From Dimorphilus gyrociliatus (lineage: Eukaryota; Animalia; Annelida): DNA of 53,796 nucleotides. The stretch is taken from assembly GCA_904063045.1 (NCBI GenBank), contig CAJFCJ010000112.1, positions 17,203-70,998 of the forward strand, read 5' to 3'. The number at the start of each line of letters is the position of its first letter. Position 1 is the stretch's first letter. Below the pieces are notes generated by a model. That model was not told the DNA's origin. It saw only the letters and a program-made list of their open reading frames with translations, and did not search any database. Below, piece by piece: positions 1 through 53,796 of this stretch. The translations under genes were made by a program, and so were the position numbers.

Positions 1-1145
1 AAAGCTTTTTAACTAGATTTTTGATGCAAAATATTACATTTAATATATTTTCTTTAATAACAAATTATTTCAATATTTGCTATAAACAAAATTTCAGCCA
101 TTTTGAATATTTGGAAAGGACAGTGATTTTTTAATAATCAAGTGAATTTGTTCTGTTGAAACAACATGGTTTAAAGTGCAACAATTGTGATTCAAAATTT
201 ATGGAAGGCAAAAATATTTGAAATGCTGCCTTTGTGAGAATCTTATCATAGAAAATGTTCAGGTAATCAGTTTTCAATTATGATTTAGGCAACTATCTTT
301 TCTTAACACATTGACACAGAAACACCTAGCATACCTGTTTGCACAGATGTAACAAAAGAAAATGTACTGTTAGCCTTAAGAAGTTAACAAATCTGGAAAT
401 TGATCAATACAAAGAAAGTAATAAGGACTTCAATGATAACAGAAGTGATCCTGCTGAGGTTAAAGATTCAACATTTGATTATGAAAGTCTCGGCAATCAG
501 AAAACCATCAATGGATGTAGAAGGAACTGATGAAAATACAGAAGATGAAAATGACTCAATCAGGAGGAATGATTTTGAGATTGTACAAGGAGAAGCAGAA
601 AAGGACATGACATTTTATGAATGATGGATATTCTTTTGTTGTTAAACATAAAACACTTACAACAACAATTTGGTATGCAGTGTGAGAAGTAAGAAAAAAA
701 GATGTGTAGCTAGAATAAGACAAATGGAAGTATATTTATTAAAGGCAATCTGGAACATAATCACAACAGAAAACCTAATTTGGAAGTAGATGTTAAAGTA
801 AAAACTGATGTAAAAACTATTTGCAAAAGTGATAACAAAGCATCTGGAAGAAGCATTGCTGAAAAATTTCTATTATCATATGAACCTAATGCTAAATGTC
901 TTCCTGATATCAATTACTTAAAAAGGATGGCAAACTCAAACAGACAAAAATTCAGGCCAGTTGAACCAAAAGTGTATAATTTCAACTTGAACACACTTTT
1001 TTACCTGATGAATTTCTCCAGAAAGACATTTGTGAAAATGGAGAAAGAATCTTAATTTTTGCAACAAACCATCAGCTGAACTTATTATCCAAATCCAACT
1101 ACTGGTATATTGATGGTACTTTCCAAATTGTTAAGGATCCATTCT
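1..1145 (+). mobile_element. Degenerate FLYWCH-MULE (Mutator) transposase fragment, diverged paralog of the 6731-9438 element
   Basis: ORF pieces (CNKRKCTVSLKKLTNLE; DFEIVQG; SGRSIAEKFLLSYEPNAKCLPDINYLKRMANSNRQ; ...WYIDGTFQIVKDPF) align with the intact transposase but are frameshifted. Homology stops at ~1145, just after the first catalytic D; the left end runs off the window. Confidence 0.9.
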
Positions 1146-1409
1146 GGTTACTTTTCAATTTTGATGGCTATTCTACCTTCCAAATCAATGTATTGTGGCT
1201 TCATTTGAATTGTTGAATTCAATTTTTCAGGTGTATCAAAGTTGTTACATCTGTTCCAATACCATATTGTGAACACTCACTGTTTGTTTGTTTTAATTAA
1301 TTCATTATGGGTGTGTTATTATGGTTGTATTTAAATATACTTTGTGAATAAAATTGTAATTATTTTATCATATTATTAGTTGATTCTTTTAGATTTAGAT
1401 ATATAAAAC

Positions 1410-1625
1410 TAGGTCATCATCCATTGATTGGAAGAGTTTTGTCTTAAAAAATACTTTTATATATGCCCCATATTGGCTTCAATAATGTTGAAGTCTGGGC
1501 AGTTAGCTGGCCATGAATGCAATGTTTCAACTTTCTTTCTCTTTAGGTATTCCTTTGCTCTGGCTGCTGTATGACAGCTGGGCCCATCGTGTTGGAAAAT
1601 TTTCCCTCTATAATAATTGAATGCA
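1410..1625 (-). mobile_element. Tc1-like transposase 3' relic (DD35E spacing)
   Basis: FQHDGPSCHTAARAKEYLKRKKVETLHSWPANCPDFNIIE matches the Tc1 QDxAxxH...WPxxSPDLNPIE motif; 35 residues between D and E by hand count. Confidence 0.85.
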
Positions 1626-1627
1626 AA

Positions 1628-2079
1628 TATAGGCAAAAAGTGCCCAGCCACCTTGTAAAATTTTTTGTTTTGATATTAAGCTATGCTGAATAGCTACTTT
1701 GAATTGGTAATAATAATGATTAATATGTATAAACTAATGTCCTTTACGAAAAATGATCAAAAAATTGTTTTTCTTTTATAAAATCCTGTTTTAGTAAATA
1801 CATCTCGAAAAAAGGGGTTAGTTAAAAATGAGTCACCATCTATTTAATCAAAAAAAGGGGGTTAAGCTGCATAAATCAAATAGGAAAGTATTTTATTATA
1901 ATTATATCTTTGGTTTTTCAAAAAAATAATGGTCATTGATAAAAAATTTGTTATTTGGTTGTTGAAAAATGCCAAGAAGGGCTATCATTGAACAAAATTA
2001 CCAAAATGTTTACAATTTCTAGCTTCAGTGCCCAATATATCTGGAAAATGTTTCAATTGCATCATACAATTGAAGATTT
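1628..2079 (+). mobile_element. 5' fragment (left TIR + N-terminal HTH) of the Tc1 family seen at 26669-28295
   Basis: TATAGGCAAAAAGTGCCCAGCCACC... matches the TIR at 26669. VVEKCQEGLSLNKITKMFTISSFSAQYIWKMFQLHHTIEDL matches VVEKHQEGLSLNKIAKMLKISRFSAQNIWKKFQLHCTIEDL. A 1-nt deletion puts the native ATG (1929) out of frame. Confidence 0.9.
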
Positions 2080-3208
2080 GAAAGTTGGCCTATCATTAAT
2101 TTTTAAACAACTACTCATTTCATCAAATTCATTACAAAAGATCAATTTATGTTATTGTGATTTAGGCAAGAACAACTGTGAAACTCTATCAAATCTGCTT
2201 TCAAACTGTTCAAAAATTGAAAAAGTTAATTTAAGTTGGAATCCAAATGTTGAACACTTTTTACCTAAAATTTGCCAAGCACTTTTAATATCGTCAATTG
2301 GACTCAAAGCTATAAACTTTTGCAATTGTAATTTGGATGGGAATAGTATTAAGAATGTTGCAGATTTATTAAAGAAATGTTGTTCTTTACAAAAAGTTGA
2401 CTTTTCATTGAATAAAGATTTAAAAGACAGCTTGCCTACTATTTTGGATGGACTCTACAATTGTTGTAATACTCTAGCAGAAATTTATTTAAAAAGTTGT
2501 CTTTTAAATGGAAGTATGGCCAGAGAAATTGGTAATTTTTTAAATAACTGCCATAAAATTGAAAAGATCAATTTATCATTTAATGACAATATGGAAAATG
2601 GATTTTTTTATATATGTAAACATCTACACAACTCTTCAAATACTCTAAAAGAAAATACAACAATATCAGAACAAATATTAAGGAATATTGCTGACACATT
2701 AAAATCAGTGAAACAGCTGATAAAGATTGATTTCAAAGGCTGCAATTTAGAAGAGGAACAATGTAGAAAGATTGGAAAGCTTTTCTAAAGTTGCTCTAAA
2801 ATAGACACAATCAACTTGGCATGGAATGTTCAGATGGGAGAAGGATTATTTAACATTTGTAAAGGACTCATCCAATCGTCAAGCTGTTTAAAAGAGATAA
2901 ATTTCGGCTGTTGTAATTTAAACAATGGGCAATGTAGACATATTGGAAACCTTTTTAAAGAATGCGCCAAGCTAGAGACAATCTACCTGACAGGAAATCA
3001 TACAACAGGCAATGGACTATTCTATATTTGTGCACAACTTCTTCATTTGTCAAATACTTTAAAATGCCTCAACTTTACAGAATGTAATTTGAGCGAAGAC
3101 CAGTCTAAAATAATAATTAACTTGTTTAAACACTGTTCAAAACTTAAAAGAATTTCTCTGGAACGGATATGGCATTGCGGAAGTGATCTTTTTGAACTAA
3201 GCAAATAG
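1955..3208 (+). pseudogene. RI-type LRR gene fragment fused in frame to a Tc1 HTH; one in-frame TAA at 2786-2788
   Basis: Alternating LxxINLxxCxL / IEKVNLSWN repeats from 2080. ORFs 1955-2788 and 2816-3208 are in the same frame, separated only by a single stop (LF*SCSKIDTINLAWN). Confidence 0.8.
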
Positions 3209-3262
3209 GTTGTTTAATTACACTGCTCTTAAATATTTTAATTATTCTTCTAATATTCCTGG

Positions 3263-3500
3263 TGATTGTTTAAAATAGTTTAGAACTAGAAACTCATTTA
3301 CTCAATAGATATTCTTTAAACAAAATACTGGCATTTTGTTGATTAATTTCTACTGAAATTACATTTCTTAAGACTACTTGTGGACGAATTTGAAAGGTTC
3401 TATTTGTGTGAGTACTTGGTGCATTGATAAATGATTGGAAAGGACGAATACTGTTCTGAAGAAGGAGAAATTCCTACAATTACAATACAACAAAGTACAA
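3263..3500 (+). repeat. Dispersed host repeat R (copy 1)
   Basis: AGAACTAGAAACTCATTTACTCAATA...GGTTCTATTTGTGTGAGTACTT recurs at 5740 (+), 35095-35385 (+), 4381-4591 (-) and 13588-13740 (-). Confidence 0.85.
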
Positions 3501-4380
3501 TTTTGTTCAATAATTTATGAAATTGATATCAATCATCCAAGGAGTTACATTATAGAGGGGAGTAGGAATCTTGTCAAAATTTTCTTTTTAGCATCTTTTG
3601 ATAAATATTGAATTCATAATATTCAAAAAACACTATTTGAAAACAGACCTAATCCTCAGTCTAGGCCTAGCATACTCTAAAAGTAATCAAAGTGCTAATT
3701 TTCCAAAATCACTAGAAATATTGTTCCTACCCCTGCAACGAGTCACATGTGATAAGGAGAAGTGGAAAATGAAGAAAACTGAAAGTGAGAAAATGTTTTA
3801 AAAAGATATTTTGTGTGCAGTTTTTATTGAATCTAAACAATTTATGCTGTATATATAAGAGAGAGGTTGAAATGTGAACAGAGAGTGACAAGCATCTCTC
3901 ACAAAATAATAAAAACAAACAGAAAAATACTTTTACAATAGATTTAAGTGTTTTAAAAAGTAAGAAAACTACTTTTTTATACTAACTGCCAAGCTACAAC
4001 TTTTTCAACAGCTATACATGATTGTTACAATTGTGCTATTGCAATACCATTAGACTGTAAAATAGAAATGGATATCTAAAGTCCAAGTATTGATAATTCA
4101 CTATATCTAAGTGCACAAAAATTCTAAAAATATGTTTGTTAAAAGGCTGCGTTGGTCTTTAAAATGGTGGAAAATGCCAAATTATTAAAAATTCCATTGT
4201 TTAGTGGTAATAATTGAATAATGAATTACAGAGCAATCGAACAATTTCTGTCATTATTGAAAAGTTTTTATACACATTTAAATTGCCTCATGAATTAAAT
4301 TATTAATTCAAAATGTAAATTAATCAATGAAAACATATCAAAAATCCTTTAGAATATTGGTTCAGTTATAAACATCACTG

Positions 4381-4591
4381 GTTGTACTTTGTTGTTTTGA
4401 AATTGGAGGAATTTCTGGTTTCTTACAACTGTAAGCATTCTTTCCAATCATTTGCCAATTTGCCAAAGTACTCACACAAATAGAACCTTTAGAATTCGTC
4501 CACAAATAGTCTTAGCAAATGTAATTTTGGTAGAAATTAATCAGCAAAACACAAGTATTTCATTTAAAGAATATGTATTGAGTAAAATGAG
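4381..4591 (-). repeat. Dispersed host repeat R (copy 2, inverted; left flank of the GT4 gene)
   Basis: Reverse complement of 3283-3500 and 35172-35385; truncated at ...GAGTAAAATGAG, 15 nt from the GT4 stop codon. Confidence 0.85.
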
Positions 4592-4606
4592 CAATTACCT
4601 ACAGTA

Positions 4607-5737
4607 TTACATACATAAAATTTCTTTATATAATGTTTCTACAGCTTTGATTGAATGTTCTAATGAGAAACCCTTTACTGCATATTCAGCACAGTAGGCA
4701 CGTCTAGCTGCTTTATTGCTGTGTTTAAGTTCTTCCATAATGGCATCAGCCAGTTCTAAATCATCTTCTACTTGAACCAGACGACCTACTTTGCTATCAA
4801 TAAAATCTGGTAAACCACCTTGGTTAGTACCCACTACAGGTGTGCCACAAGCAAGGGCTTCAATTGCTACTAGACCAAATGGTTCTGTACGAGAAGGCAC
4901 AACACTTACATCTGCAATATTGTACATTTTAACTAATGTCTCTTGATTAACGTGACCTAAGAAGTATACATGTTCAAGGTCTAAATCTTCTTTCATACGC
5001 TTTAACACACCATAGAGTTCACCATTACCTGCAATAATTGTCATTACTTTACCACAGGTTGATTTTTCGTAACGTTTTGCTGCTTTTAGCAATACATCCA
5101 CACCTTTAAAGTGTGTTAATTTTCCTGCAAAAGCTACGATACAATCTGTTTTGACTGTAACATCAAATTCATTTAAAACAGTTTCTTTACTTAAGTCCAG
5201 AGGATGGAATAAGGATTCATCATAACCATTTAATAAAATCATACGTTTATTGCTCGGCACTTTATACAGTTGTGCTGTTTCAGCATCTACTTGTTTAGAG
5301 ATGGTAATAATCATCTTAGCATTAGCCACCCCTTCTATAGCAAAACTATGGTATCTGTCATCTTTTACAAAGCCTTTTAAATCCGTACCATGGGCAGTAA
5401 TAACATATGGCACACCTGTTAACATAGCAGCATAAGGTGTAATCCATAAATGCTGTGCATGGATAATATCTGGTTTAAAAGTATCTACTTCCTCTTGAAC
5501 CACTTCTATATATTTATCCATGTAAGTCTTCATTTGATCATCTGATAATTCATAATAAGTTGTATTACTTCTTGGATGGGTTGTAAAACATGGAAAATTG
5601 AAATCCACTTCAGGCTTTACTGTATTTGGTCCCTTAAACTTAATGACTCTTGATTCAAATCCTTTATATGTCTTGTCTTCGTGTTCTGGATAAATGATTT
5701 TAACCTTATGGCCAAAACTTACTAAAGCCTTTGCCAA
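4607..5737 (-). CDS. Bacterial-type GT4 (GT-B fold) glycosyltransferase, intronless, 5'-truncated
   Basis: 376-codon open frame with FKPDIIHAQHLW, TAHGTD, FAGKLTHFKGVDVLL and the GT4 E-x7-E motif PSRTEPFGLVAIEALACGTPVV. No ATG at the start (begins TTG in LAKALVSFGHKV), so the first beta-strand is missing. Visibly less AT-rich than its flanks. Confidence 0.9.
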   Translation of the reverse strand: MAKALVSFGHKVKIIYPEHEDKTYKGFESRVIKFKGPNTVKPEVDFNFPCFTTHPRSNTTYYELSDDQMKTYMDKYIEVVQEEVDTFKPDIIHAQHLWITPYAAMLTGVPYVITAHGTDLKGFVKDDRYHSFAIEGVANAKMIITISKQVDAETAQLYKVPSNKRMILLNGYDESLFHPLDLSKETVLNEFDVTVKTDCIVAFAGKLTHFKGVDVLLKAAKRYEKSTCGKVMTIIAGNGELYGVLKRMKEDLDLEHVYFLGHVNQETLVKMYNIADVSVVPSRTEPFGLVAIEALACGTPVVGTNQGGLPDFIDSKVGRLVQVEDDLELADAIMEELKHSNKAARRAYCAEYAVKGFSLEHSIKAVETLYKEILCM

Positions 5738-5739
5738 AC

Positions 5740-5850
5740 AACTGGTTGTTTAAACTTACTTGTTAAGAACTAGAAACTCATTTACTCAATACATATTCTT
5801 TGGATGAAATACTGGTATTTTGTTCAATTATTTCTACTGAAATTACATTT
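5740..5850 (+). repeat. Dispersed host repeat R (copy 3; right flank of the GT4 gene)
   Basis: AACTGGTTGTTTAAACTTACTTGTTAAGAACTAGAAACTCATTTACTC is near-identical to 35143-35190. It abuts the truncated GT4 5' end on one side and a MULE 3' fragment on the other. Confidence 0.85.
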
Positions 5851-6168
5851 TATGAGAAATTACTGTCAGAAAAAAGGATTTACAAACATCAAAAGAAAAA
5901 GTATATTGGAATCCAAAAGAAAATTTTTGATTTATGGGATGATTTCAACTTGAACAAATTAACATCAACTGATCTATTAATGCAGACATCCCATATCTAC
6001 TCTCCAGCATAAATATCATTTGTCAAGCTTTATTCTTTTTTAATATAATATTTAGTCTTTTAAATACATACTTTTAGATTTATAGCTAAATCTTTTATTC
6101 AAAAATTCAAAAAAAACACGTATAAAAATAGGGTGTGAATGTACCCTGGTGCGAATGTACCCCAACTC
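5851..6168 (+). mobile_element. 3' end of the MULE family (last codons, stop and shortened TIR)
   Basis: YEKLLSEKRIYKHQKKKY...SHIYSPA* plus 3' UTR and TIR ending CCCAACTC, near-identical to the reverse complement of 6731-7110. Confidence 0.9.
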
Positions 6169-6730
6169 TATTATAACATTTATATCTGATACAAAGTCTG
6201 AGACTTTTGTGAAAACTTTCCATGAAGCTTTTTCAATGTATTTGATGATTTTTAAACTGCAAAATTTGGAAAAAGAGCAAAAACTTTTCCAACAATCATT
6301 ATAGGGAGATATTGATGTAAAAATATTGCTGTTTTATTATACCTCAAAACACAAAAAGCTACACAATAATGAATACCAAAATTTTCCTCACATTAATTTA
6401 ATCTTTAGGATGTTATTAGCAATAATTTTTTCATTTCTTAATGGTTAATATAAAAGACAAACAGACATGAAAAATTACCCTTTAAAAGTTTAAAACAATA
6501 TCATCTAATGTGAAAAAAAGACAAACTAAAATTTTACACCTTTTAAAAATTAATCTTTATCAGTGATAAAAAATTTCTAAAAAGCTATCTGATCTTGTTT
6601 TCTTCATCTACATTTAAATTACAAGACACCAAAAGAAGATATTTCATTATCTTTGAAGATTTTTGAAGATCTTCAAAAATAGTAAATAATACATTTCTCA
6701 TTTTAATATTATTACTCAATTATAATTTCA

Positions 6731-9438
6731 GAGTTGGGGTGCGAACGTACCTGGGTGTGAACGTACCCGGGTGCGAACGTACCCTGGGCGGGTGCGAACG
6801 TACCTGGGTACGTTCGCACCCTATTTTTATATTTATTTTATTTTTGAATTTTTGAATAAAAGATTTAGCTATAAATCTAAAAGTATGTATTTAAAAGACT
6901 AAATATTATACTAAAAAACAATAAAGCTTGACAAATGATATTTATGCTGGAGAGTAGATATGGGATGTCTGCATTAATAGATCAATTGATGTCAATTTGT
7001 TCAACTTGAAATCATCCCATAAATCAAAAATTTTCTTTTGGATGTCAATATACTTTTTCTTTTGATGTTTGTAAATCCTTTTTTCTGACAGTAATTTCTC
7101 ATAAACTGCAATCAACTCAGACTCTTTTTTTAGCTCATCAACCAGCATGTAAAAAGAACCTTTAGCAGGCAGCTTACTATTCATTCTTTGATGCCATCCT
7201 TCACAATCATTATTGGTCCTAATAGACAAACCAAAAACTGACCAGTTATTTGGTTTCCATAATTTATTTTTGATCCAGTTTGTTTGGAAGTATTGCAGCA
7301 GGTCCAAAAATCTATTTTTTTCACAAAGTTCTGCATTTATGCTGTCAAATGTTGGTTGAATAATATGTGCTGGCAAGAATGGCAGAGCCATCAATTTTCT
7401 GAAATCTTTCCAATCATTTCCTTTTTCTTTGTATTTCTTTACATAGCCAAGAGCCTATTCAATAATATAAGTTATTTAATAGATAATGTTATATATATTT
7501 GAATGTAACTGACTTGTATTTTCCTGTATACTGCTTGTGTGAAATGAAATACACAACCTTGAAATTCAGTGAGGGGATATACTTTTGATAATGCTTTCCA
7601 TAGTCCTTTTTCAAAATCCATTGTAATTCTTTTTGGATGAAAATCATTGATAAGATTGTTGATATGCTACAAAAAGCAACTTTATTTATCATCACTTTTG
7701 AAGAGATAATATGAAATATTTACTTGAAATGCTTGTAAGTATGCTTTGGTATGCTTTGAAGTCAGAAAAATAAAAACAAGAGGAACTTGCTTCATATCAC
7801 CACTCTTCTTAACAAATGAGTGAATAGTGACAAGTTGATAAAATGGTTCTTTTACAATCTTGAAAGTACCATCAATGTACCAACAGTTGGATTTTGATAA
7901 TAAATTCAGCTGATGGTTTGTTGCAAAGATTAAAATTCTTTCTCCATTTTCACAAATATCTTTCTGCAAAAATTCATCAGGCAAAAATGTTTCATCTAAA
8001 TTAAAGTTGTACACTTTAGGTTCCACTGGCCTAAACTTTTGTCTATTTGAGTTTGCCATTCTCTTCAAATAGTTGATATCAGGAAGACAAGTTGCATTGG
8101 GTTCATAGGATAGAAGAACTTTTTCAGCAATGCTTCTTCCAGATGTTTGATTATCACTTCTGCAAACAATTTTCAAATCTGTTTTCACTTTAATATCCAC
8201 TTCTAAATTCTTTTTTCTGTTGTGATTATGTTCCAAATTGCCTTTGAGAAATAAATTTCCATTTTGTCTTATTCTGGCCACACATCTTTTCTTCTTACTT
8301 CTCACACTGCACACCCAAATAGTACTTGATGGTGTTTTATGTTTAACAACAAAAGAATATCCATCATTCAGTAAAATGTCATGTCCCTTTCTACTTCCTC
8401 CTTTTACAATCTCAAAATCACTTTTTGTGGATGATTCACAATATTCTTCAGCATTCTCTTCAACTTCCTCCAAAGAGTCTAGGTCCATTGATTGGCATTC
8501 TGAAAGAACATGATTTTCATCCTCCAATATTGATTCCTCAACTGCAGCAATCTTATTTCTTTCATCAATAAAGCTTTCTTCAGAATTTACTTTGAATTGA
8601 TGAATTTCCAGATTAGTTAACTTCTTGAGCATGACAGTACATTTTCTTTTGTTACAAGGTTTGCAAATTGGTATGTTATGTGTTTCTATAAGAATATGTT
8701 AAAAAATATAATTACATGAAAGCTGATTAAAGAGTTACATACCTGTGCATTTCCTATGAATAAGATTCTTACAAAGGCTGCATTTCAAATATTTTTGCCT
8801 TCCATAAATTGTTGAATGACAATTGTGACATTTGAAAGCCATTTTTTAATCTTCAATCAAACGTAGATGGTTATCTAAAAATATTTCCAGTTATCAATAA
8901 ATTTCCTTTCCAAATATTCAAAATGGCTGAAATTTTATTTATGAAAAATATTCAGCTTTTTCACAATTGAAGATAGTATATTACATCAAAATATCATGAA
9001 TCAACAATCTCAATGATTAGATATAAATACTCACTTCTGTTGAAGCTTCCAAGAAGAACTTTGTCCAAATTTATTCAGTAAATATAGCTTTACTTTTGCA
9101 AGGATAAATATTCCAAGTGAAAGTTTATTTAATAAAACTATCACTATTAAAATGGCTGCTATTTCACTTTCAACAACATTTTCTTTTAAAGTAGTAATTT
9201 AATATTGATGGGATATGTATTCTATTTAATATCTGCATTCTATCAAATCAATATATTAACAAATATATAATGAAGGAACAGAAGGAAAAAAGGGTGTCAA
9301 TGTACATGTTTATTCAAAAATTCAAAAATAAAATAAATATAAAAATAGGGTGCGAACGTACCCAGGTACGTTCGCACCCGCCCAGGGTACGTTCGCACCC
9401 GGGTACGTTCGCACCCAGGTACGTTCACACCCGACTCC
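6731..9438 (-). mobile_element. Apparently intact autonomous Mutator/MULE (Phantom-like) DNA transposon
   Basis: ~130-bp TIRs built from tandem GGGTGCGAACGTACC units (6731-~6860, ~9310-9437) with GAG...CTC termini. Flanking duplication ATAATTTCA at 6722-6730 and 9439-9447 (9 bp plus one extra C, or 10 bp with one mismatch). Full transposase inside. Confidence 0.93.
6942..8842 (-). CDS. MULE transposase, 4 exons, ~575 aa: PHD-like finger, FLYWCH, DDE domain
   Basis: Hand-built exons 8842-8743, 8685-7724, 7666-7514 and 7454-6942 (GT-AG introns of 57, 57 and 59 nt) keep frame. Motifs: WYIDGTFK (D), ITMDFEKG (D), GCVFHFTQ (CxxH), RTNNDCEGWH (E), FLYWCH WVCSVRSKKKRC...HNH. Confidence 0.9.
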
Positions 9439-12400
9439 ATAATTTCACAATATTTGAACAATTTCTTAACAAATTTCTCAAATTTATTCTTTGTTCTTCA
9501 TTCAAATTACATGAATCCAAGTAAAGCTGTCTCAAAGTATTAGAAGATTTTTGAAGTGCATCACAAAAGTTGAAGCTTCCATTACCAATTCCAATATTGA
9601 CTCTCACTTCTAAATATTCTATATTAGAACAATTTCTTAAGAAATTTCCCAAATTTTTACTTTGTTCTTCATTCAATTGACATGAATACAAGTGCAGCTG
9701 TCTCAAAGTATTAGAAGATTTTTGAAGTGCATCACAAAAGTTGAAGCTTCCATTACCAATTGCAATATTGCAATTCACATTTAAAATTTCTATATTAGAA
9801 CAGTTTCTTAAGAAATTTCCCAAATTTTTACTTTGTTCTTCATTCAAATTACATAACATCAAGTGAAGCTGTCTCAAAGTATTAGAAGATTTTTGAAGTG
9901 CATCACAAAAGTTGAAGCTTCCATTACCAATTGCAAAATTGTAATTCACATTTAAAATTTCTATATTAGAACAGTTTCTTAAGAAATTTCCCAAATTTTT
10001 ACTTTGTTCTTCATTCAATTCACATGAATGCAAGTGAAGCTGTCTCAAAGTATTAGAAGATTTTTGAAGTGCATCACAAAAGTTGAAGCTTCCATTACCA
10101 ATTGCAATATTGTCTCCCACTTCTAAATATTCTATATTAGAACAATTTCTTAAGAAATTTCCCAAATTTTTACTTTGTTCTTGATTCAATTTACATGAAA
10201 ACAAGTTCAGCTGTCTCAAAGTATTAGAAGATTTTTGAAGTGCATCACAAAAGTTGAAGCTTCCATTACCAATTGCAATATTGTAATTCACATTTAAAAT
10301 TTCTATATTAGAACAGTTTCTTAAGAAATTTCCCAAATTTTTACTTTGGTCTTCATTCAATTTACATGAATCCAAGTGCAGATGTCTCAAAGTATTAGAA
10401 GATTTTTCAAGTGCATCACAAAAGTTGAAGTTTCCATTACCAATTGCAATATTGCTTTGCACTTCTAAATATTCTATATTAGAACAGTTTCTTAAGAAAT
10501 TTCCCAAATTTTTACTTTGTTCTTCATTCAATTGACATGAATACAAGTGCAGCTGTCTCAAAGTATTAGAAGATTTTTCAAGCCCATCCAAAATAGCAAA
10601 TAATCCATTACCAATTGCAATATTGTAACTCAAATTTAAAATTTCTATATTACAACAATTTCTTAAGAAATTTCCCAAATTTTTACTTTGTTCTTCATTC
10701 AAATTACATGAAGCCAAGTAAAGCTGTCTCAAAGTATTAGAAGATTTTTGCAGTGCATCACAAAAGTTGAAGCTTCCATTACCAATTGCAATATTGTAAT
10801 TCACATTTAAAATTTCTATATTAGAACAGTTTCTTAAGAAATTTCCCAAATTTTTACTTTGTTCTTCATTCAATTTACATGAATCCAAGTGAAGCTGTCT
10901 CAAAGTATTAGAAGATTTTTGAAGTGCATCACAAAAGTTGAAGCTTCCATTACCAATTGCAATATTGTAATTCACATTTAAAATTTCTATATTAGAAAAG
11001 TTTCTTAAGAAATTTCCCAAATTTTTACTTTGGTCTTCATTCAATTTACATGAATCCAAGTGCAGATGTCTCAAAGTATTAGAAGATTTTTCAAGTGCAT
11101 CACAAAAGTTGAAGTTTCCATTACCAATTGCAATATTGCTTTGCACTTCTAAATATTCTATATTAGAACAGTTTCTTAAGAAATTTCCCAAATTTTTACT
11201 TTGTTCTTGATTCAATTCACATGAAGCCAAGTGCAGCTGTCTCAAAGTATTAGAAAATTTTTGAAGTGCATCACAAAAGTTGAAGTTTCCATTACCAATT
11301 GCAATATTGCTTCCCACATCTAAATATTCTATATTAGAACAATTTCTTAAGCAATTTCCCAAATTTTTACTTTGTTCTTCATTCAAATTACATGAAGCCA
11401 AGTGCAGCTGTCTCAAAGTATTAGAAGATTTTTCAAGTGCATCACAAAAGTTGAAGCTTCCATTACCAATTGCAATATTGCTTCCCACATCTAAATATTC
11501 TATATTAGAACAGTTTCTTAAGAAATTTCCCAAATTTTTACTTTGTTCTTCATTCAATTGACATGAATACAAGTGCAGCTGTCTCAAAGTATTAGAAGAT
11601 TTTTCAAGTCCATCCAAAATAGCAAATAATCCATTACCAATTGCAATATTGTAACTCAAATTTAAAATTTCTATATTACAACAATTTCTTAAGAAATTTC
11701 CCAAATTTTTACTTTGTTCTTCATTCAAATTACATGAAGCCAAGTAAAGCTGTCTCAAAGTATTAGAAGATTTTTGAAGTGCATCACAAAAGTTGAAGCT
11801 TCCATTACCAATTGCAATATTGCTTCCCACTTCTAAATATTCTATATTAGAACAGTTTCTTAAGAAATTTCCCAAATTTTTACTTTGTTCTTCATTCAAT
11901 TCACATGAAAACAAGTGCAGCTCTCTCAAAGTATTAGAAGATTTTTGAAGTGCATCACAAAAGGTGAAGCTTCCATTACCAATTGCAATATTGTAATTCA
12001 CATTTAAAATTTCTATATTAGAACAGTTTCTTAAGCAATTTCCCAAATTTATACTTTGTTCTTCATTCAAATTACATGAAGCCAAGTGAAGCTCTCTCAA
12101 AGTATTAGAAGATTTTTGAAGTGATTGACAAACATTAAATATCCCATTTCCCACATTTATATTTCCTTGAAGATTTAATGTTTTAATTGATGAAGAATCC
12201 TTTATGAGATGTTCAATTTCCCAACAGTGTTGTTCATTTAAGTTAGAGTTAGGGAAACTTACTACTGTTATGTCTTGTCCTAATTCTATTGATTCAGCTA
12301 AGTCATTTATTTTCTTGTCAGTATTATTCTGTGTAGAGAGTTCTACAATTTCATTGCTTTCATTTTCAAAATACTTTTTTAGTTTTAAAAATTTTGTCAT

Positions 12401-13400: not shown

Positions 13401-13909
13401 AGGTTATAAAGGATCTGTGTAACTCTATGATATTTTTGTAATTCAAACATAATTGATTTTACTTGATTCTTTTTAAATCTACTACTAAATATTTAAGTTG
13501 AATTATTTCTTTTTAAACAAGATAGTTAAAAAAGAATTTATATCACAGACTATGGTTATGCATAGAATTTAAAAATTTTGAGTTTAGAGTAGAAATTAAT
13601 CAACAAAACACCAGCATTTCATGCAAAGAATATGTGTTGAATAAATTGAGCTTCTAGTTCTAAACAAGCTAGTTTAAACAACTAGCTGACTGTTAGAAAA
13701 CTGAACTATCAACTGTTCATTTCGTAGGGTTTATATACTCTTTTAAAAGGTTGATAGTTCACAAATTTCAATGTTCACAAAGCAAAAGTAACATTTTAAG
13801 ACAAAGAAAAGTTCTAAACATGCCCATCTTTTTATTGTTTTCATCTTCTAAATAATAGTTTAATTTCAAAGGTTGGAGAGTTGCATAAGATGGAATAATT
13901 TGAATAGCA

Positions 13910-17532: not shown

Positions 17533-19721
17533 TAAATAAATTTCAGCCATTTTGAATATTTGGAAAGGAATTTATTGATAACTGGAAATGATTTTTAGAT
17601 AACCATCTACATTTGATTGAAGATTAAAAAATGGCTTTCAAATGTCACAATTGTCATTCAACAATTTATGGAAGGCAAAATATTTGAAATGCAGCCTTTG
17701 TAAGAATCTTTTCATAGGAAATGCACAGGTATGTAACTCTTTACATCAGCTTTCATGTAATTATATTTTTTAAATATTCTTATAGAACACATAAATACCA
17801 ATTTGCAAACCTTGTAACAAAGAAAATGTACTGTCATGCTCAAGAAGTTAACTAATCTGGAAATTCATCAATTCAAAGTAAATTCTGAAGAAAGCTTTAT
17901 TGATGAAGAAATAAGATTGCTGGCAGTTGAGGAATCAATATTGGAGGATGAAAATCATGTTCTTTCGAGAATGCCATCAATGGACTAGATCTTTGGAGGA
18001 AGTTGAAGAGAATGCTGAAGAATATTGTGAATCATCCACAAAAAGTGATTTTTGAGATTGTAAAAGGAGGAAGTAGAAAGGGACATGACATTTTACTGAA
18101 TGATGGATATTCTTTTGTTGTTAAACATAAACACCATCAAGTACTATTTGGGTGTGCAGTGTGAGAAGTAAGAAGAAAAGATGTGTGGCAGAATAAGACA
18201 AAATGGAATTTATTTCTAAAGGCAATTTGGAACATAATCACACAGAAAAAGAATTTAGAAGTGGATATTAAAGTGAAAACAGATTTGAAAATTGTTTGCA
18301 GAAGTGATAATCAAACATCTGGAAGAAGCATTGCTGAAAAAGTTCTTCTATCCTATGAACCCAATGCAACTTGTCTTCCTGATATCAACTATTTGAAGAG
18401 AATGGCAAACTCAAATAGACAAAGTTTAGGCCAGTGGAACTAAAGTGTACAACTTTAATTTAGATGAAACATTTTTGCCTGATGAATTTTTGCAGAAAGA
18501 TATTTGTGAAAATGGAGAAGAATTTTAATCTTTGCAACAAACCATCAGCTGAATTTATTATCAAAATCCAACTGTTGGTACATTGATGGTACTTTCAAGA
18601 TTGTAAAGAACCATTTTATCAACTTGTCACTATTCACTCATTTGTTAAGAAGAGTGGTGATATGAAGCAAGTTCTCTTGTTTTTATTTTTCTGACTTCAA
18701 AGCTACCAAAGCATACTTACAAGCATTTCAAGTAAATATTTCATATTATCTCTTCAAAAGTGATGATAATAAAGTTGCTTTTTTGTAGCATATCAACAAT
18801 CTTATCAATGATTTTCATCCAAAAAGAATTACAATGGATTTTGAAAAAGGACTATGGAAAGCATTATCAAAAGTATATCCCTCACTGAATTTCAAGGTTG
18901 TGTATTTCATTTCACACAAGCAGTATACAGGAAAATACAAGTCAGTTACATTCAAATATATATAACATTATCTATTAAATAACTTATATTATTGAATAGG
19001 CTCTTGGCTATGTAAAGAAATACAAAGAAAAAGGAAATGATTGGAAAGATTTCAGAAAATTGATGGCTCTGCCATTCTTGCCAGCACATATTATTCAACC
19101 AACATTTGACAGCATAAATGCAGAACTTTGTGAAAAAATAGATTTTTGGACCTGCTGCAATACTTCCAAACAAACTGGATCAAAAATAAATTATGGAAAC
19201 CAAATAACTGGTCAGTTTTTGGTTTGTCTATTAGGACCAATAATGATTGTGAAGGATGGCATCAAAGAATGAATAGTAAGCTGCCTGCTAAAGGTTCTTT
19301 TTACATGCTGGTTGATGAGCTAAAAAAGAGTCTGAGTTGATTGCAGTTTATGAGAAATTACTGTCAGAAAAAAGGATTTACAAACATCAAAAGAAAAAGT
19401 ATATTGACATCCAAAAGAAAATTTTTGATTTATGGGATGATTTCAAGTTGAACAAATTGACATCAATTGATCTATTAATGCAGACATCCCATATCTACTC
19501 TCCAGCATAAATATCATTTGTCAAGCTTTATTGTTTTTTAGTATAATATTTAGTCTTTTAAATACATACTTTTAGATTTATAGCTAAATCTTTTATTCAA
19601 AAATTCAAAAATAAAATAAATATAAAAATAGGGTGCGAACGTACCCAGGTACGTTCGCACCCGCCCAGGGTACGTTCGCACCCGGGTACGTTCACACCCA
19701 GGTACGTTCGCACCCCAACTC
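17533..19721 (+). mobile_element. Near-identical copy of the 6731-9438 MULE (5' end lost in the gap, many 1-nt indels)
   Basis: Reverse complement of ~8941-6731; ends with the TIR CCCCAACTC directly against NLR LRR sequence. Confidence 0.93.
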
Positions 19722-30894: not shown

Positions 30895-31250
30895 TACTAC
30901 CATTGACAATGGCAACCAATTCACAACTGGTGCTAACATCACTCTAGAATTTGTGCAACCCATTCAATATTGCAATGGTCAGCAAGTATATTAGGCATTC
31001 GATTTAGCAGATCAACCTGAATGTCAAGTATACAACCAACCTGTGACAAAAATATTAGCTACTTTGTATGAAATAAACACAGCTGATTTAGAGGTTGAAG
31101 CAGTGAAATGTATGGTGTGGAAGAGAGAGAACTTCTACACTTATTCTTTTTTGGTTCAAAGAAGCATATAGTTGAAAAATTCATTGTTACATTGTCAGAA
31201 GATGAATGTAGGAGAATGCATCAGGAGAAGTCTACTTTGTTGTATCGTGA
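30895..31250 (+). pseudogene. Decayed class III viral fusion glycoprotein (rhabdovirus-G/env-like) fragment
   Basis: QYCNGQQVY*AFDLADQPEC...EAVKCMVWKRENFYTYS/FFGSKKHIVEKFIVTLSEDECRRMHQEK, with one stop (30992) and one frameshift in the T-run at ~31150. The C-x12-FFG-x17-CR spacing equals the lyssavirus G segment as I recall it. Confidence 0.65.
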
Positions 31251-31439
31251 TTGTAGGAATTTCATTCTTGTCCCAACTGTATTTGTCCATACAGCTCATT
31301 TAATATTATGCCAAAGTTCTGATCCAAATAGATTCGAGTAGAGCCAGTATTGTTGTAACTTGTAAACTTATAAATTTGCCAAGCAAGAACAGTACACTCT
31401 TTTACAAAAAACAAGAGAAATCCAAGGTAAATATTTTCA

Positions 31440-34780: not shown

Positions 34781-36097
34781 GTATTCAGCTTTTAGTACTT
34801 TAGAAAGAACTCTATTTCATACGAAATAGACTCTTTGACTGTATCAGATGGTGGCTACTTGGGAATTAACAAACGAACAAAGAACATGGAAAAGATGCAG
34901 ATCAAACACCAGATGCTGATGAGGCAGGCCTATTAGCAGTGGCACATGTTTGGCATGTGGCCCTAATCTTAGGATTATATTTTATATGTTTGATATAACA
35001 GTCTTTCATATTTTTGTTACTTGAGAATTATGAGACCGTCAGACTTCAACTTTGTAATCCTTTGACCACTTGAACCCAAGCTTTGGAAATGTATAAAAGG
35101 AAATGCATTTTCGCAGCTTGTCAGTTCAGTTCTTTAACCATTAACTGGTTGTTTAAACTTACTTGTTTAGAACTAGAAACTCATTTACTCAATACATATT
35201 CTTTGGACGAAATACTGGTGTTTTGTTGAATTAATTCTACTGAAATTACATTTGTTAAGACTATTTGTGGAGGAACTTGAAAGGTTCTATTTGTGTGAGT
35301 ACTTTGGTGCATTGATAAATGATTGGAAAGGACAAATACTGTTCTGAAGAAGCAGAAATTCCTACAATTACAATACAACAAAATAATAATAGTTAAGCAA
35401 GTAACAATATGAGAGTTCAATAGCAGCGAAAATAGTTCATAATAGCAGGTTGCCAAATTACCAAACTGTCTTCCAATGTTGAGGAGTAGATGGATGACTC
35501 CTACACACACTTACAAAATAATTACATTGTGTTTGACTTGAGGATTCTTTATCACATTTTGACAATTGACCAACCAAATTGTTTTCAAATTGAGGTGTTC
35601 TTGGAACATAAACAAATAAATTTTCCTACACTTCATTGTTAAAATTTAGATTTTCCCTCTAACCTCCAGTGAGCATGGTTCTAATATCTTATCAACATTT
35701 GCAAATGGATATCTGATACCTTTTGAAACTTCTAAAGATTTTGTACATACACTAGAACTTGAATCTGATATATTGCTAAATTTATGTCTGTTGCATATGT
35801 AGCTACTGAGAATTAATTGGATGGTAGATCTAGAGAGAATTAAATAAAGGGTCTTGTATAAAACATTAATGTGGTATGATTCTGTGCTCGAAATGTACAG
35901 AAGTAAATTAGATTTAAATATGCATATAGCTGATTGTCCTGATTGTCCAGGCAGTCACTGTAACATATTTTCTGTTTAACTCAGTGATGATCTCCAAAAT
36001 GGAGATTTAAGTTAACCAAATCTGTATCAATAATCACATATTCTGAAATAGCAGCTCTGCAAGAGGGACACTCAGATTTTGGGGGAGCAGGTGAAAC

Positions 36098-37745: not shown

Positions 37746-39008
37746 CTAATCAATATAAATCATTGACAATACACCTTGATTTTCAGCTTTTGCATTACTT
37801 CCCTGTATTTTTATTTGTAGAAAGTCATTTCTGGACAAGGATAGTAACATTGAGGTTGATGATAAATATGGATCATAATCGTTACTTTGACCAGCGTAGA
37901 AAGTTGACAGTAAATTTCCATTAACTCTGATTTCAATGTCTAGTTCATGCTTATTACTCTCGAATGGCAAGTTAGCAGTTACATAATAAGTTCCAGATTG
38001 TGGAACTACATATTTTCCTTCGATATTATTCCATGAATTGTGAGAATCCAATCTTATATTATGAAATCTTACAAATTCTGATTTATCGACATCAAAACTA
38101 TTAGAGCCGCAAAAGTAAGGTTTTTCAGTGTCCAATTTGAATATAGCTAAATAAGTTTGCAAATCAGCATCAGCATAGGATGTTCCATCAGTTAGAGTCA
38201 GGCCAACACTGTCTCCAGCATGTAGGTAGGTTAGAAAACTTTTTGTGTGGTGAGTTGTATGACGGCCCATGTAGAATGTATTAATGCTTCTATACTTTTC
38301 TTTATTGTCATTTATATGAAAGCTGACAATTGTGTCATCAGCTGGATTAAAACCAGAACCAAAACTAACAAAGTATAAACCAGATTCGCTAACTTTTATC
38401 ATGTTGTTTTCTAATCTAAAACCTCTCATAGCCATGATAATTGGCAGGGGAATTGGCGATGATTTTTCCATCCATTCGTCATCACGAGCGCCAAAGAAAT
38501 ATGAACTCGAATCGTAATGAAAACCAGTCCATAATGTATTATTACCTCCAGTAAGGTTTGCAGTATCAAATGCTTGTTGAACGTATGGCTTATTTAATGC
38601 TGTTAGAAAAAATAGACTGTCTCTTGTAATAGTATTAAGGTTATTATTTGACTTTAGTTTAGTCATTCCCAATTCTCTACCAGTTCCATCTAGCTGGAAA
38701 GACACCCTAGAAGTTTCCACAACTGTTGCTGTCATTGATAAAAAGTACATTCCAGATTTTGTTATATTAAGACTATTATCAGCTGGATTGAATAATTTTT
38801 GAGAGTTTAGGTGCACTTTTTCCCAATTCATTCTCCCCTCTCCAACATTTCCAGTATTGTCAAGTGAAACCATGAATGCTGGATTATTTGATTTTACTGC
38901 AGCTGTTTCTTCAATAAAATCTTTCATATTTTTCTTTGGAGATGAATCAACAAATCTGCTAGAAGCAATTGAACAAAAAACAACCACAATCAAACAAGAA
39001 TAAAACAT
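37746..39008 (-). CDS. Secreted protein with three tandem gC1q/TNF-like domains, intronless, no collagen stalk
   Basis: Hydrophobic leader MFYSCLIVVVFCSIASS, then three C1q-type starts: PAFMVSL...ITKSGMYFL, SYFFGAR...VSESGLYFV, PYFCGS...VVPQSGTYYV. Confidence 0.85.
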   Translation of the reverse strand: MFYSCLIVVVFCSIASSRFVDSSPKKNMKDFIEETAAVKSNNPAFMVSLDNTGNVGEGRMNWEKVHLNSQKLFNPADNSLNITKSGMYFLSMTATVVETSRVSFQLDGTGRELGMTKLKSNNNLNTITRDSLFFLTALNKPYVQQAFDTANLTGGNNTLWTGFHYDSSSYFFGARDDEWMEKSSPIPLPIIMAMRGFRLENNMIKVSESGLYFVSFGSGFNPADDTIVSFHINDNKEKYRSINTFYMGRHTTHHTKSFLTYLHAGDSVGLTLTDGTSYADADLQTYLAIFKLDTEKPYFCGSNSFDVDKSEFVRFHNIRLDSHNSWNNIEGKYVVPQSGTYYVTANLPFESNKHELDIEIRVNGNLLSTFYAGQSNDYDPYLSSTSMLLSLSRNDFLQIKIQGSNAKAENQGVLSMIYID

Positions 39009-39761: not shown

Positions 39762-41063
39762 GTGAGTACCATTCTCTTCTTTTTCTTTTTTAGGCAATTG
39801 ATGAGTGAATATTTAAAGTTTTTCTCTTCTTTTTTCTTAGTTTGTATGATATGTTTGACTTTTGCTCAAGTTAATGGAGAGTTAGACAACAACAAGAGTT
39901 TACAAAAAGTTGTTAAAAGTTCTGAGGAAAATCCAGCCTTCTCTGTTTCACTTAAAGAATCTGGAAATCTTGGAAATGGCAAAGTTAAATGGACAAGTGT
40001 TGACATCAATCATCAAAATCTATTTAATACATTAGACAATAGTCTGGAAATAACTAAAACTGGAATATATTACTTGACTATGACAATGACTCTATCAAAA
40101 ACTTCTAGAGCATCGTTTTCTCTAGAGAAAACTGGTAGAAGGTCTGGGATGACAACATATAATCAAGTTGATGGAAGAGAGTCAATTAATAAGCGCAGTC
40201 TTCATTTGCTAACTTCATTAAACAGGCCTTATGTTAAACAAGTTTTTACTACATCAGGTTTGGTTGGTGGAAATAACAGAGAAACAGCATGGGCTGGCTT
40301 TCACTATGACACTGATCATTATTTCTTTGGAGCACGTGATGAAGAGTGGGAAGATAAAAGTGTTATTCCATTGCCAATAACTATGGCTTTGAGAGGGTTT
40401 CAGAAGCATGGAAACAAATTGAATGTACTCAGCACGGGTCTCTACTTTATTGGTTTCAGTTCAGCTTTCAATCCACTGGCAGAGTCAACATTAACCATTA
40501 AAAGTAGTCAAAGTTCATTGAGACATTCTATAAGATTTCACCATATAACCCGACATCCAATTATTTCTTCAACGAGTCTTTTGGCAAATTTAGAGGAAGG
40601 GGAAAATATTGAACTACAGTTAGACTCTGGTAGTTTATACTCAGATGCTGATTTGCAAACTTCTCTAACTCTCTTTAAGCTAGATTCAAATAAATCTTAT
40701 TTTTACAGTAAAGGAGAAAAGCGTTCAACTTGTAAACCAGATTCAATCAATTTTGGTTTAGTAAAATTCGATTCAGACAATTCTTGGATTCAGAGTGATC
40801 AAACCTATGTTGCTCCAAAGAATGGAACTTATTTCATTTCTGTAAATCTATCTTTCTTTAGGAAAAGAGAATCAGAAGAAGCCTACATTGAAGTGAATGG
40901 AGTTAAGAAGACAACACTCTACAAACATACATTTCACATTATTGAAGAGTCTCTAACAATGAGTGAAGTATTATTAAAAATGAATAAAGGTGATAAATTG
41001 AGAGTTGTCAATAGAGGATGTGAAGCAGGTGAAAATGGACTATTAATTATTTTAATTAGTTAA
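39762..41063 (+). CDS. Paralogous secreted triple-gC1q protein, divergently transcribed
   Basis: Leader (likely start MSEYLKFF, ~39800), then PAFSVSL...TKTGIYYL, HYFFGAR...STGLYFI, SYFYSK...VAPKNGTYFISVN; aligns along its length with the minus-strand gene. Confidence 0.85.
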   Translation: MSTILFFFFFRQLMSEYLKFFSSFFLVCMICLTFAQVNGELDNNKSLQKVVKSSEENPAFSVSLKESGNLGNGKVKWTSVDINHQNLFNTLDNSLEITKTGIYYLTMTMTLSKTSRASFSLEKTGRRSGMTTYNQVDGRESINKRSLHLLTSLNRPYVKQVFTTSGLVGGNNRETAWAGFHYDTDHYFFGARDEEWEDKSVIPLPITMALRGFQKHGNKLNVLSTGLYFIGFSSAFNPLAESTLTIKSSQSSLRHSIRFHHITRHPIISSTSLLANLEEGENIELQLDSGSLYSDADLQTSLTLFKLDSNKSYFYSKGEKRSTCKPDSINFGLVKFDSDNSWIQSDQTYVAPKNGTYFISVNLSFFRKRESEEAYIEVNGVKKTTLYKHTFHIIEESLTMSEVLLKMNKGDKLRVVNRGCEAGENGLLIILIS

Positions 41064-51900: not shown

Positions 51901-52715
51901 CAAAGTTTAGGAGAAACATTTAAACACTGTTCAGCATTGGAGAATGTTGATTTCTCAGGGAATAGTAACATGGGGAATGGCTTTAAAGGTATATGTGATG
52001 GACTCAAATCTTCTTCAATGTCTATGAAAACAATTAAACTTGATGGGTGTCATTTGAATGATGAACAAGCTCAAAGTTTAGGAGAAACATTTAAACACTG
52101 TTCAGCATTGGAGAATGTTGATTTCTCATGGAATAGGGAGATGGGGAATGGCTTTAAAGGTATATGTGTTGGACTCAAATCTTCTTCAATGTCTATGAAA
52201 ACAATTAAACTTCATGGGTGTTATTTGAATGATGAACAAGCTCAAAGTTTAGGAGAAACATTTAAACACTGTTCAGCATTGGAGGATGTTGATTTCAGAT
52301 TGAATGAAAACATGGGGAATAGCTTTAAAAGGATATGTGATGGGCTCAAATCTTCTTCAATGTCTATGAAAACAATTAATCTTGGTTGGTGTTATTTGAA
52401 TGATGAACAAGCTCAAAGTTTAGGAGAAACATTGAAACACTGTTCAGCATTGGAGAATGTTGATTTCTCATGGAATAGTAACATGGGGAATGGCTTTAAT
52501 GGGATATGTGATGGACTCAAATCTTCTTCAATGTCTATGAAAACAATTACAGTTGTTGAGTTATTTGAATGATGAACAAGCTCAAAGTTTAGGAGAAACA
52601 TTTAAACACTGTTCAGCATTGGAGAATGTTGATTTCTCATATAATAGAAGATAGGAATGGCTTTAAAGTGATATGTGTTGGACTCGAGTTGGGGTGCGAA
52701 CGTACCTGGGTGTGA
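45907..52715 (+). CDS. NLR copy A: death-fold-like N-terminus, NACHT, ~22-23 RI-type LRR units (open to 50145, then indel-broken; ends in the MULE TIR)
   Basis: 1412-aa ORF with Walker A LIQGEPGIGKS, Walker B IILLLDGADE, CKVPLL and the winged-helix motif YHLSFQEYFAAKYL. 57-aa LRR units run from ~48790 to 52685. The ~95-aa helical N-terminus is called death-fold by position and pattern only. Confidence 0.9.
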
Positions 52716-53796
52716 ACGTACCCGGGTGCGAACGTACCCTGGGCGGGTGCGAACGTACCTGGGTACGTTCGCACCCTATTTTTATATTTATTTTATTTTT
52801 GAATTTTTGAATAAAAGATTTAGCTATAAATCTAAAAGTAATGTATTTAAAAGACTAAATATTATACTAAAAAACAATAAAGCTTGACAAATGATATTTA
52901 TGCTGGAGAGTAGATATGGGATGTCGCATTAATAGATCAATTGATGTCAATTTGTTCAACTTGAAATCATCCATAAATCAAAAATTTTCTTTTGGATGTC
53001 AATATACTTTTTCTTTTGATGTTTGTAAATCCTTTTTTCTGACAGTAATTTCTCATAAACTGCAATCATCAGACTCTTTTTTTAGCTCATCAACCAGCAT
53101 GTAAAAAGAACCTTTAGCAGGCAGCTTACTATTCATTCTTTGATGCCATCCTTCACAATCATTATTGGTCCTAATAGACAAACCAAAAACTGACAGTTAT
53201 TTGGTTTCCATAATTTATTTTTGATCCAGTTTGTTTGGAAGTATTGCAGCAGGTCCAAAAATCTATTTTTTTCACAAAGTTCTGCATTTATGCTGTCAAA
53301 TGTTGGTTGAATAATATGTGCTGGCAAGAATGGCAGAGCCATCAATTTTCTGAAATCTTTCCAATCATTTCCTTTTTCTTTGTATTTCTTTACATAGCCA
53401 AGAGCCTATTCAATAATTAAGTTATTTAATAGATAATGTTATATATATTTGAATGTAACTGACTTGTATTTTCCTGTATACTGCTTGTGTGAATGAAATA
53501 CACACCTTGAAATTCAGTGAGGGGATATACTTTTGATAATGCTTTCCATAGTCCTTTTTCAAAATCCATTGTAATTCTTTTTGGATGAAAATCATTGATA
53601 AGATTGTTGATATGCTACAAAAAGCAACTTTATTTATCATCACTTTTGAAGAGATATATGAAATATTTACTTGAAATGCTTGTAATATGCTTGTATGCTT
53701 TGAGTCAGAAAATAAAACAAGAGGACTTGCTTCATATCACCACTCTTCTTAACAAATGAGTGAATAGTGACAAGTTGATAAAATGGTTCTTTTACA
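52686..53796 (-). mobile_element. Third near-identical copy of MULE-1 (3' TIR end; continues past the window)
   Basis: Matches 6731-~7860 apart from single-base indels; joined to the LRR at the same nucleotide (GTTGGACTC|GAGTTGGGG) as the 19721 copy. Confidence 0.93.

Follow-up and report, generated by a model that had tools for sequence, protein, structure and literature searches.

Known bacterium-to-animal transfers beside transposons include the mannanase gene HhMAN1 of the coffee berry borer and the foreign genes of bdelloid rotifers. Insertions of endosymbiont DNA, such as the Wolbachia fragments in arthropod and nematode genomes, are mostly non-functional. Pack-MULEs, which are Mutator-like elements with captured gene fragments, have been described mainly in plants (PMC6446971). 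For the annelid Dimorphilus gyrociliatus, the genome paper mentions horizontal gene transfer only in a cited title (PMC7854359), and our literature search found no paper describing the GT4 transfer treated here. We analysed a stretch of 53,796 nucleotides from this worm (contig CAJFCJ010000112.1, positions 17,203 to 70,998; hereafter the window), in which a bacterial GT4 glycosyltransferase gene lacking its 5' end lies between animal repeats.

Bacterial origin of the glycosyltransferase fragment

The original prediction had described an intronless frame of 376 codons with complete C-terminal GT4 motifs and a higher GC content than its flanks, cut about 20 codons into its N-terminus and otherwise free of disabling mutations, and each of these features was confirmed. 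The open-frame list and Pfam placed the 5'-truncated frame at 4607..5737 on the minus strand. Glycos_transf_1 (PF00534) was matched by residues 196-346 at 125.8 bits against a cut-off of 26.4, and Glyco_transf_4 reached 58.1 bits, with profile positions 11-168 of 170 matched. The two glutamates of the EX7E motif, E307 and E315 in the numbering of the bacterial ortholog P0002, are retained, and both are invariant columns of the family. MshA, BshA and similar NCBIfam families were also matched, each below its own cut-off, and the best solved relatives, a sucrose-phosphate-synthase-like protein, BshA and MshA, are of low similarity. An exact database look-up of the window GT4 product returned no record. 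The GC content of the fragment is 34.7%, as against 27-29% in the flanks and 29.3% in the whole window.

The bacterial-derived segment, at 4592..5738 on the minus strand, consists of GT4 codons 23-399, the stop codon and 15 nt of the bacterial 3' intergenic flank; the cut thus lies exactly 22 codons into the gene. When window positions 4593-5738 were compared by blastn with two bacterial contigs (L001 and L002), the nucleotide identity was 86.6-86.9% over 1146 nt with no gaps. Read by eye, the homology on the 3' side reaches 4592, 15 nt beyond the stop, with GGTAATTG as its final letters. Past these letters the bacteria continue with TAAAGGAGCG, the ribosome-binding site of the next gene, whereas the window passes into a repeat, here called R. 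The 5' limit of the homology is the last base of codon 22 (position 5738). At this limit the window shows R, read in reverse, up to ...CCAGTT, and a single filler G stands between it and the TTTGGC of the gene. Both of these joins are blunt, with no useful microhomology. Upstream of the frame, a TAA lies in frame at 5750-5752, followed by further stops at 5756-5758 and 5786-5788, and the first in-frame ATG is codon 69, at position 5533. Neither AATAAA nor ATTAAA occurs within 400 nt downstream of the frame, and tblastn of the window found neither a missing N-terminal exon nor other pieces of the donor operon.

We then compared the fragment with database proteins. A protein search gave 3965 matches, and the best 120 of them all belong to the GT4 bacterial family, with the checked contexts being bacterial. 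The comparable genes are those of uncultured marine or sediment Clostridia (P0001-P0003 and P0132-P0136; MAGs LOGT_bin.0251 and ZodW_maxbin.062). The window copy resembles them in amino acid identity (91-92%, as for the closest database proteins, which are 398-399 aa long) and in nucleotide identity (84-87%), is colinear with them without gaps, and has preserved every one of the 119 invariant residues that fall in the retained part; unlike them, it has neither codons 1-22 nor the operon neighbours, and lies between animal repeats. Every examined context of the close relatives is a dense bacterial operon with one gene order, namely a lytic transglycosylase (SLT), a 411-aa protein, GT4, a cNMP-binding protein and an NTP_transferase (sugar nucleotidyltransferase). 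The gene for the 411-aa protein overlaps the GT4 start, and TyrRS, a two-component system and PFOR are encoded close by. P0132-P0136 were considered as possible complete worm copies inside the 90% protein clusters and were rejected, their contexts being all bacterial. In one contig (L009:1502-2706) the orthologous GT4 is split by an apparent frameshift into pieces of 88 aa and 308 aa, and the latter has the length of the window frame when read from its first ATG. A relation between this 308-aa protein (P0012) and the ATG-started frame was rejected, because P0012 comes from a frameshifted bacterial gene and the equal length is coincidental.

Among GTDB representatives, the matches at 80-81% identity come from uncultured Clostridia MAGs. 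In a tree of 64 rows, the window sequence is sister to P0001-3 (SH-aLRT 99) within a Clostridia clade of 12 rows with a support of 100, and the records of the nearest ESM-Atlas clusters among those listed name bacteria or archaea almost throughout. The BLASTp and phylogeny proposed as a check thus place the fragment within bacteria. Of the suggested likeness to Firmicutes and Thermotogae proteins, the Firmicutes part stands in the form of uncultured Clostridia, and the Thermotogae part found no support. The nucleotide identity of the window to the lineages L001/2, L006 and L007 is 83.9-86.8%, and these lineages share 84-87.7% with each other (95% between L001 and L002). Since the window is as distant from these bacteria as they are mutually, the donor is presumed to be a fourth, unsampled lineage of the same group. 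The synonymous divergence (dS) to the nearest bacterium is 0.73 and dN/dS is 0.06, and this divergence is essentially bacterial. These results show that the GT4 fragment is of bacterial origin and entered the animal by horizontal gene transfer.

The 5' junction and the neighbouring Mutator-like elements

Repeat R flanks the GT4 fragment in opposite orientations at its two ends. At the bacterial 3' end, R positions of about 38-243 (4382..4591, minus strand) lie in sense on the strand of the gene. At the truncated 5' end, R positions 1-111 (5739..5850, plus strand) are antisense to the gene and are reached via the filler G; this piece, taken from 5739/5740 to 5850, is 95.5% identical to 35143-35253, and its junction with the gene is absent from the short-read contigs. 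A full copy at 3263..3500 on the plus strand is paired with 4382-4591 in inverted orientation, with 880 nt of non-coding DNA between the two. Further matches in the window lie at 35123-35385, 13588-13707 and 31233-31332, in line with the claim that R recurs elsewhere. An inverted R 15 nt past the stop and an R joined directly to the cut end had also been described; both are present in the window, and the 15 nt proved to be the bacterial 3' flank. An Rfam scan of 3000-7000 gave sub-threshold chance matches only, and R is thus no known RNA-derived repeat. The R copy at 35.1 kb (35100-35385) is preceded by TATAAAAGG and an initiator-like motif, CAGTTCAGTT, and the copy at 13588-13707 lies in sense orientation approximately 420 nt upstream of a TRIM-LRR gene. 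Instead of being a transposon, R may serve the LRR gene family as a common promoter or 5'-leader module.

The stretch is contained in five sequencing runs from two studies, and short-read contigs of these runs were aligned to window positions 2600-7400. The contigs of three runs (X1, X2 and X5) all depart from the window at 5738 and enter Mutator-type terminal repeats, not R. Beyond 5738 they match the Mutator terminal subrepeats at 6738-6768 exactly over 31 nt and go on with AAGGCAGGTGTGAACATACCCAGGTACATT, another variant of the subrepeat that occurs nowhere in the window. After leaving the window, they continue for 667-1038 nt. At this junction the sequence passes into the terminal repeat 7 nt inward of its terminus, in the direction from the outside to the inside, indicating that GT4 lies outside that element, at a left end. 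The junction with R on the 3' side is contained in an X2 contig. The predicted direct join of the cut end to R is not reproduced on the 5' side, where the contigs of all three runs join the Mutator repeats.

The read depth also changes at this place. Window positions 5739-6737 are about 8-fold shallower than their neighbours in X1, or absent. The X1 depth is about 490-2800 over 5820-6730 (about 500-1200 from 5981) and about 4500 elsewhere; the X2 depth is 0 over 5981-6624 and 10 elsewhere; and in X5 the GT4 depth is 127 compared with about 10 in the left flank. A second stretch, 3100-3243, also has about 8-fold less X1 depth than its neighbours and none in X2, and its GC content gives no explanation. 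GC bias was rejected as the cause of both X1 drops (5820-6730 and 3100-3243), because the depth varies 8-fold between pieces that share the same GC (0.285-0.29). The region 5739-6737 is probably a minor haplotype or a local misassembly in the reference, which was built from RS II reads, merged across haplotypes and scaffolded (PMC7854359); alternatively, the unit of GT4 and terminal repeat (GT-TIR) is multi-copy and the window represents one divergent copy. For the low-depth stretches 5739-6737 and 3100-3243, this leaves locus-specific joints between multi-copy modules on the one hand and minor-haplotype sequence on the other. The X5 excess over GT4 could come from copy number or, should X5 be an RNA run, from expression.

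To the right of the fragment lies MULE-A (6731..9438, minus strand), a complete Mutator-like element of Phantom-like type with terminal repeats, a FLYWCH domain and a target-site duplication (TSD). The TSD is a perfect 9-bp ATAATTTCA at 6722-6730 and 9439-9447, the terminal repeats of about 90 nt are made of 16-nt subrepeats, and the FLYWCH zinc finger scored 30.4 bits. These traits fit the Phantom-type group 20 of Mutator-like elements (PMC6446971). MULE-A looks recently active; copies with 98.4% identity are found at 17533-19721 and 52686-53796, and an old copy (78%) at 15-1143. Between R and MULE-A, a 3'-terminal Mutator-like fragment (5842..6170, plus strand) contains the transposase C-terminus and terminal subrepeats ending in CAACTC. 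It is 94% identical to MULE-A positions 2327-2640, and its detached end is joined to R position 111. The facing ends of this fragment and MULE-A are separated by an AT-rich spacer (6171..6730), over which the X1 depth is about 490-610 as against about 4500. A single Pack-MULE spanning 15-6170 was considered and found no support; its 5' piece is 78% and its 3' piece 94% identical to MULE-A, and pieces so different in divergence do not look like one element. Elsewhere in the window, a Tc1/mariner-type DDE_3 transposase fragment (1457-1651, minus strand) lies between the old MULE copy and LRR frames at 1955-3208. At 37746-39008 and 39762-41063 there are head-to-head paralogs, 40% identical, with TNF and C1q domains (PF00229 and PF00386). 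The frame at 37746-39008 matches its own database entry, and its paralog is annotated as DgyrCDS14967 of D. gyrociliatus, which confirms the host.

These junctions and depths raise the question of amplification, that is, whether the truncated GT4 lay beside or inside a Phantom-like Mutator element and was multiplied with it to about ten near-identical copies, either as a Pack-MULE-like capture or as an aberrant transposition unit, with the window as one rearranged copy. The joining of 5738 to MULE terminal subrepeats in all three runs and the two depth classes that GC does not explain (X1 about 4500 and 500, X2 10 and 0, X5 127 and about 10) are consistent with this possibility. One HiSeq lane was obtained for the 78-Mb genome (PMC7854359). 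Such a lane would give a single-copy k-mer depth of a few hundred, near the lower class, which favours a multi-copy reading; the uncalibrated contig depths would correspond to about 8-10 copies of the GT-TIR unit. On the other hand, GT4 lies outside the TSD-bounded MULE-A and any other TSD-bounded element of the window, so that it does not belong to a Pack-MULE there. No terminal repeat stands to the left of GT4 (no TIR motif was found left of 6131), and the read-supported junction likewise puts GT4 outside the element; the depths are, moreover, uncalibrated, and X5 may be an RNA run. We consider such an amplification unlikely on balance. A related and equally doubtful reading is that the recently acquired GT4 was broken at codon 22, fused in frame to a Phantom-like TIR, which supplied ATGs, and then amplified to about ten near-identical copies; if true, a transposon would have driven the amplification of a foreign bacterial gene in an animal, with exonisation of that gene as a further possibility.

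Effect of the truncation and age of the fragment

The extent of the truncation is exact, and decay is absent from what is left. In a family alignment of 37 sequences, the retained part (residues 23-399) contains 119 invariant and 54 near-invariant columns. The window copy keeps all of the former and 52 of the latter, the two changes being S75T and A159V, and it has no indels, in agreement with the claim that nothing but the truncation disables the gene. The missing codons 1-22 comprise the invariant N22 and 13 near-invariant residues, NHFPLEGSGSG.YT (N7 to G17, Y19 and T20), which are at least 90% conserved in the alignment and are all missing from the window.

To relate these residues to the structure, we used an AlphaFold model of the full-length ortholog P0002 (pLDDT 89.9, pTM 0.86), in which strand β1 is formed by residues 2-6, a loop by 7-14 and helix α1 by 15-29. 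Mapped onto this model, the truncation removes β1 and the Gly-rich loop together with half of α1 from the N-terminal Rossmann-like domain, and the start codon is lost as well. The window frame begins in the middle of α1, and translation from codon 69 would also drop β2 and β3; a complete N-terminal Rossmann-like domain, which belongs to the GT-B fold, is thus not present in the window copy. In GT-B enzymes, the Gly-rich loop between β1 and α1 contacts the phosphates of the sugar nucleotide. Having lost β1, this loop, half of α1 and the start codon, the fragment would be unable to make an active GT-B enzyme alone, and it is most likely non-functional.

This reading has to be weighed against a functional chimeric gene, in which the N-terminus and the start codon would be provided by the Mutator terminal repeat or by an unseen spliced upstream exon. 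The arrangement supported by the reads translates as MYLGMFTPALVRSHPGTFAP followed by LAKALV across the junction; the frame stays open across the 60 read bases of the terminal repeat and includes two in-frame ATGs, so that a chimeric protein is possible. All invariant residues of the retained part are kept, as in a functional gene. A candidate splice site, cag/t, lies just before the frame, with an AG 3 nt upstream, and the GT-TIR contig is 12-fold deeper in X5 than the adjacent intergenic DNA, which would be of relevance if X5 were an RNA run. However, the segment that replaces codons 1-22 has neither the near-invariant NHFPLEGSGSG motif nor strand β1, the window contains no N-terminal exon, and no run is recorded as RNA. 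The joint from 5738 to 6738 is not an intron, since its ends are CA..GG and it occurs in DNA runs. A functional chimeric gene thus seems improbable, and a fragment that is most likely non-functional remains the preferred interpretation.

As no change has occurred at approximately 281 non-synonymous sites of the invariant residues, the neutral divergence of this start-less fragment would be about 1% or less if the fragment is unconstrained. The complete set of 119 invariant residues and the absence of indels along 1146 nt make the fragment appear young. We also examined the rate of change on the window branch. With L003 and L004 as the only outgroups, the window had 17:14 non-synonymous to synonymous changes compared with 1:15 in its sister (p=0.0013). 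When L006 and L007 were added, the ratio was 21:28 in the window and 32:82 in the pooled bacterial lineages, a difference that is not significant (p=0.07). Relaxed selection on the window branch is therefore not claimed, the first signal having vanished with the closer bacterial lineages; it came from a comparison against a short stem. The GC-to-AT bias of the non-synonymous changes was rejected as a sign of host mutation pressure, because the bacteria are equally biased (p=0.49).

Integration in worm DNA and origin of the locus

One X2 contig of 2779 nt spans window positions 3998-5738 with a single difference, and in this way bridges non-coding worm DNA, R and the entire fragment. Contigs of X1 (4945-5738) and X5 (4589-5738) also cover the fragment. 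In X1, the depth over GT4 is 4800 and that over the flanks 3670-4545. Reads across the host junction and coverage in comparison with host DNA had been named as checks, and the results show on the 3' side a bridged junction and overall a host-like depth. The only other GT-like contig in X1 is 513 nt long, is 93% identical to the window over 5112-5322 and has a depth of 10. It is nearer to the fragment than any database bacterium (87%), and may stem from the donor lineage, living in the culture of the worm, or be a diverged copy of low abundance. At position 4717 the assembly has T and all three runs have C. The T gives N341 in the window and the C of the reads gives D, as in all bacteria; the T reflects an error of the assembly or else a minor allele.

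Contamination, or an assembly chimera of bacterial DNA and worm repeats, is a very improbable source of the fragment: a 5738-R junction unseen in the short-read contigs, reads that are shallow or absent over 5981-6730, an assembly from noisy, haplotype-merged and scaffolded PacBio RS II reads (PMC7854359) and the deviation from all three runs at 4717 would fit such an error, but the 3' junction is bridged in X2 together with 600 nt of worm flank, the truncation point is identical in two studies, GT4 and the worm flanks are equally deep in X1, with the depth of GT4 exceeding that of the sole bacterial-like contig about 460-fold, and no further piece of a bacterial gene is found in the window despite the dense donor operon. 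The host-like depth, the bridging contig and the occurrence of the same fragment in two studies exclude contamination, and the GT4 fragment is physically integrated in worm DNA. The symbiont or contaminant chimera offered earlier is accordingly rejected as a whole; a local misassembly or a minor haplotype is possible on the 5' side.

Taken together, these findings suggest that 4592-5738 holds a young copy of a GT4 gene acquired from an uncultured Clostridia lineage, and that this copy, which lacks its 5' end, most likely has no function. We regard this explanation as likely. According to it, D. gyrociliatus would have taken up the GT4 gene from such a lineage, the original insert presumably being a single gene cut from its operon and ending 15 nt after the stop. 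Codons 1-22 would then have been lost at a rearrangement breakpoint at 5738, probably in this region where Mutator-like elements, repeat R and fragments of LRR immune genes are intermixed. We infer that the fragment is a secondary copy and that break-and-join caused the truncation. The original prediction of a recent transfer is thereby kept in that the sequence is bacterial, young and located in worm DNA, whereas this place is unlikely to be the site of the transfer itself.

Well-supported and very young bacterium-to-animal gene transfers are few. The present fragment fixes the exact 3' limit of the transferred DNA, at 15 nt past the stop and just before the ribosome-binding site of the next gene, and the divergence of about 1% sets an upper bound on the age of the truncation. 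The foreign gene has apparently been duplicated, broken and shuffled in a region rich in Mutator elements and NLR genes. The fragment has also drawn attention to 5739-6737, where the reference probably contains a local error or a minor haplotype. Taken alone, it is a dead gene fragment of the ordinary kind, and it is of value as a marker for reconstructing the spread of the transferred gene.

Among the known systems, HhMAN1 and the bdelloid cases resemble the worm locus in that a single intronless bacterial gene, nested in a bacterial clade, lies in animal DNA rich in transposable elements, while the worm copy differs from them in being truncated, probably dead and very young. Like the Wolbachia insertions, it is a bacterial gene fragment integrated in an animal chromosome; unlike them, it derives from an anaerobic Clostridia lineage of free-living type, from which only one gene was taken and probably duplicated later. 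With the Pack-MULEs it shares the physical tie to Mutator-type terminal repeats and perhaps the presence in multiple copies, but in the window GT4 does not lie between a TIR pair with a TSD, the DNA is of bacterial origin and the host is an animal.
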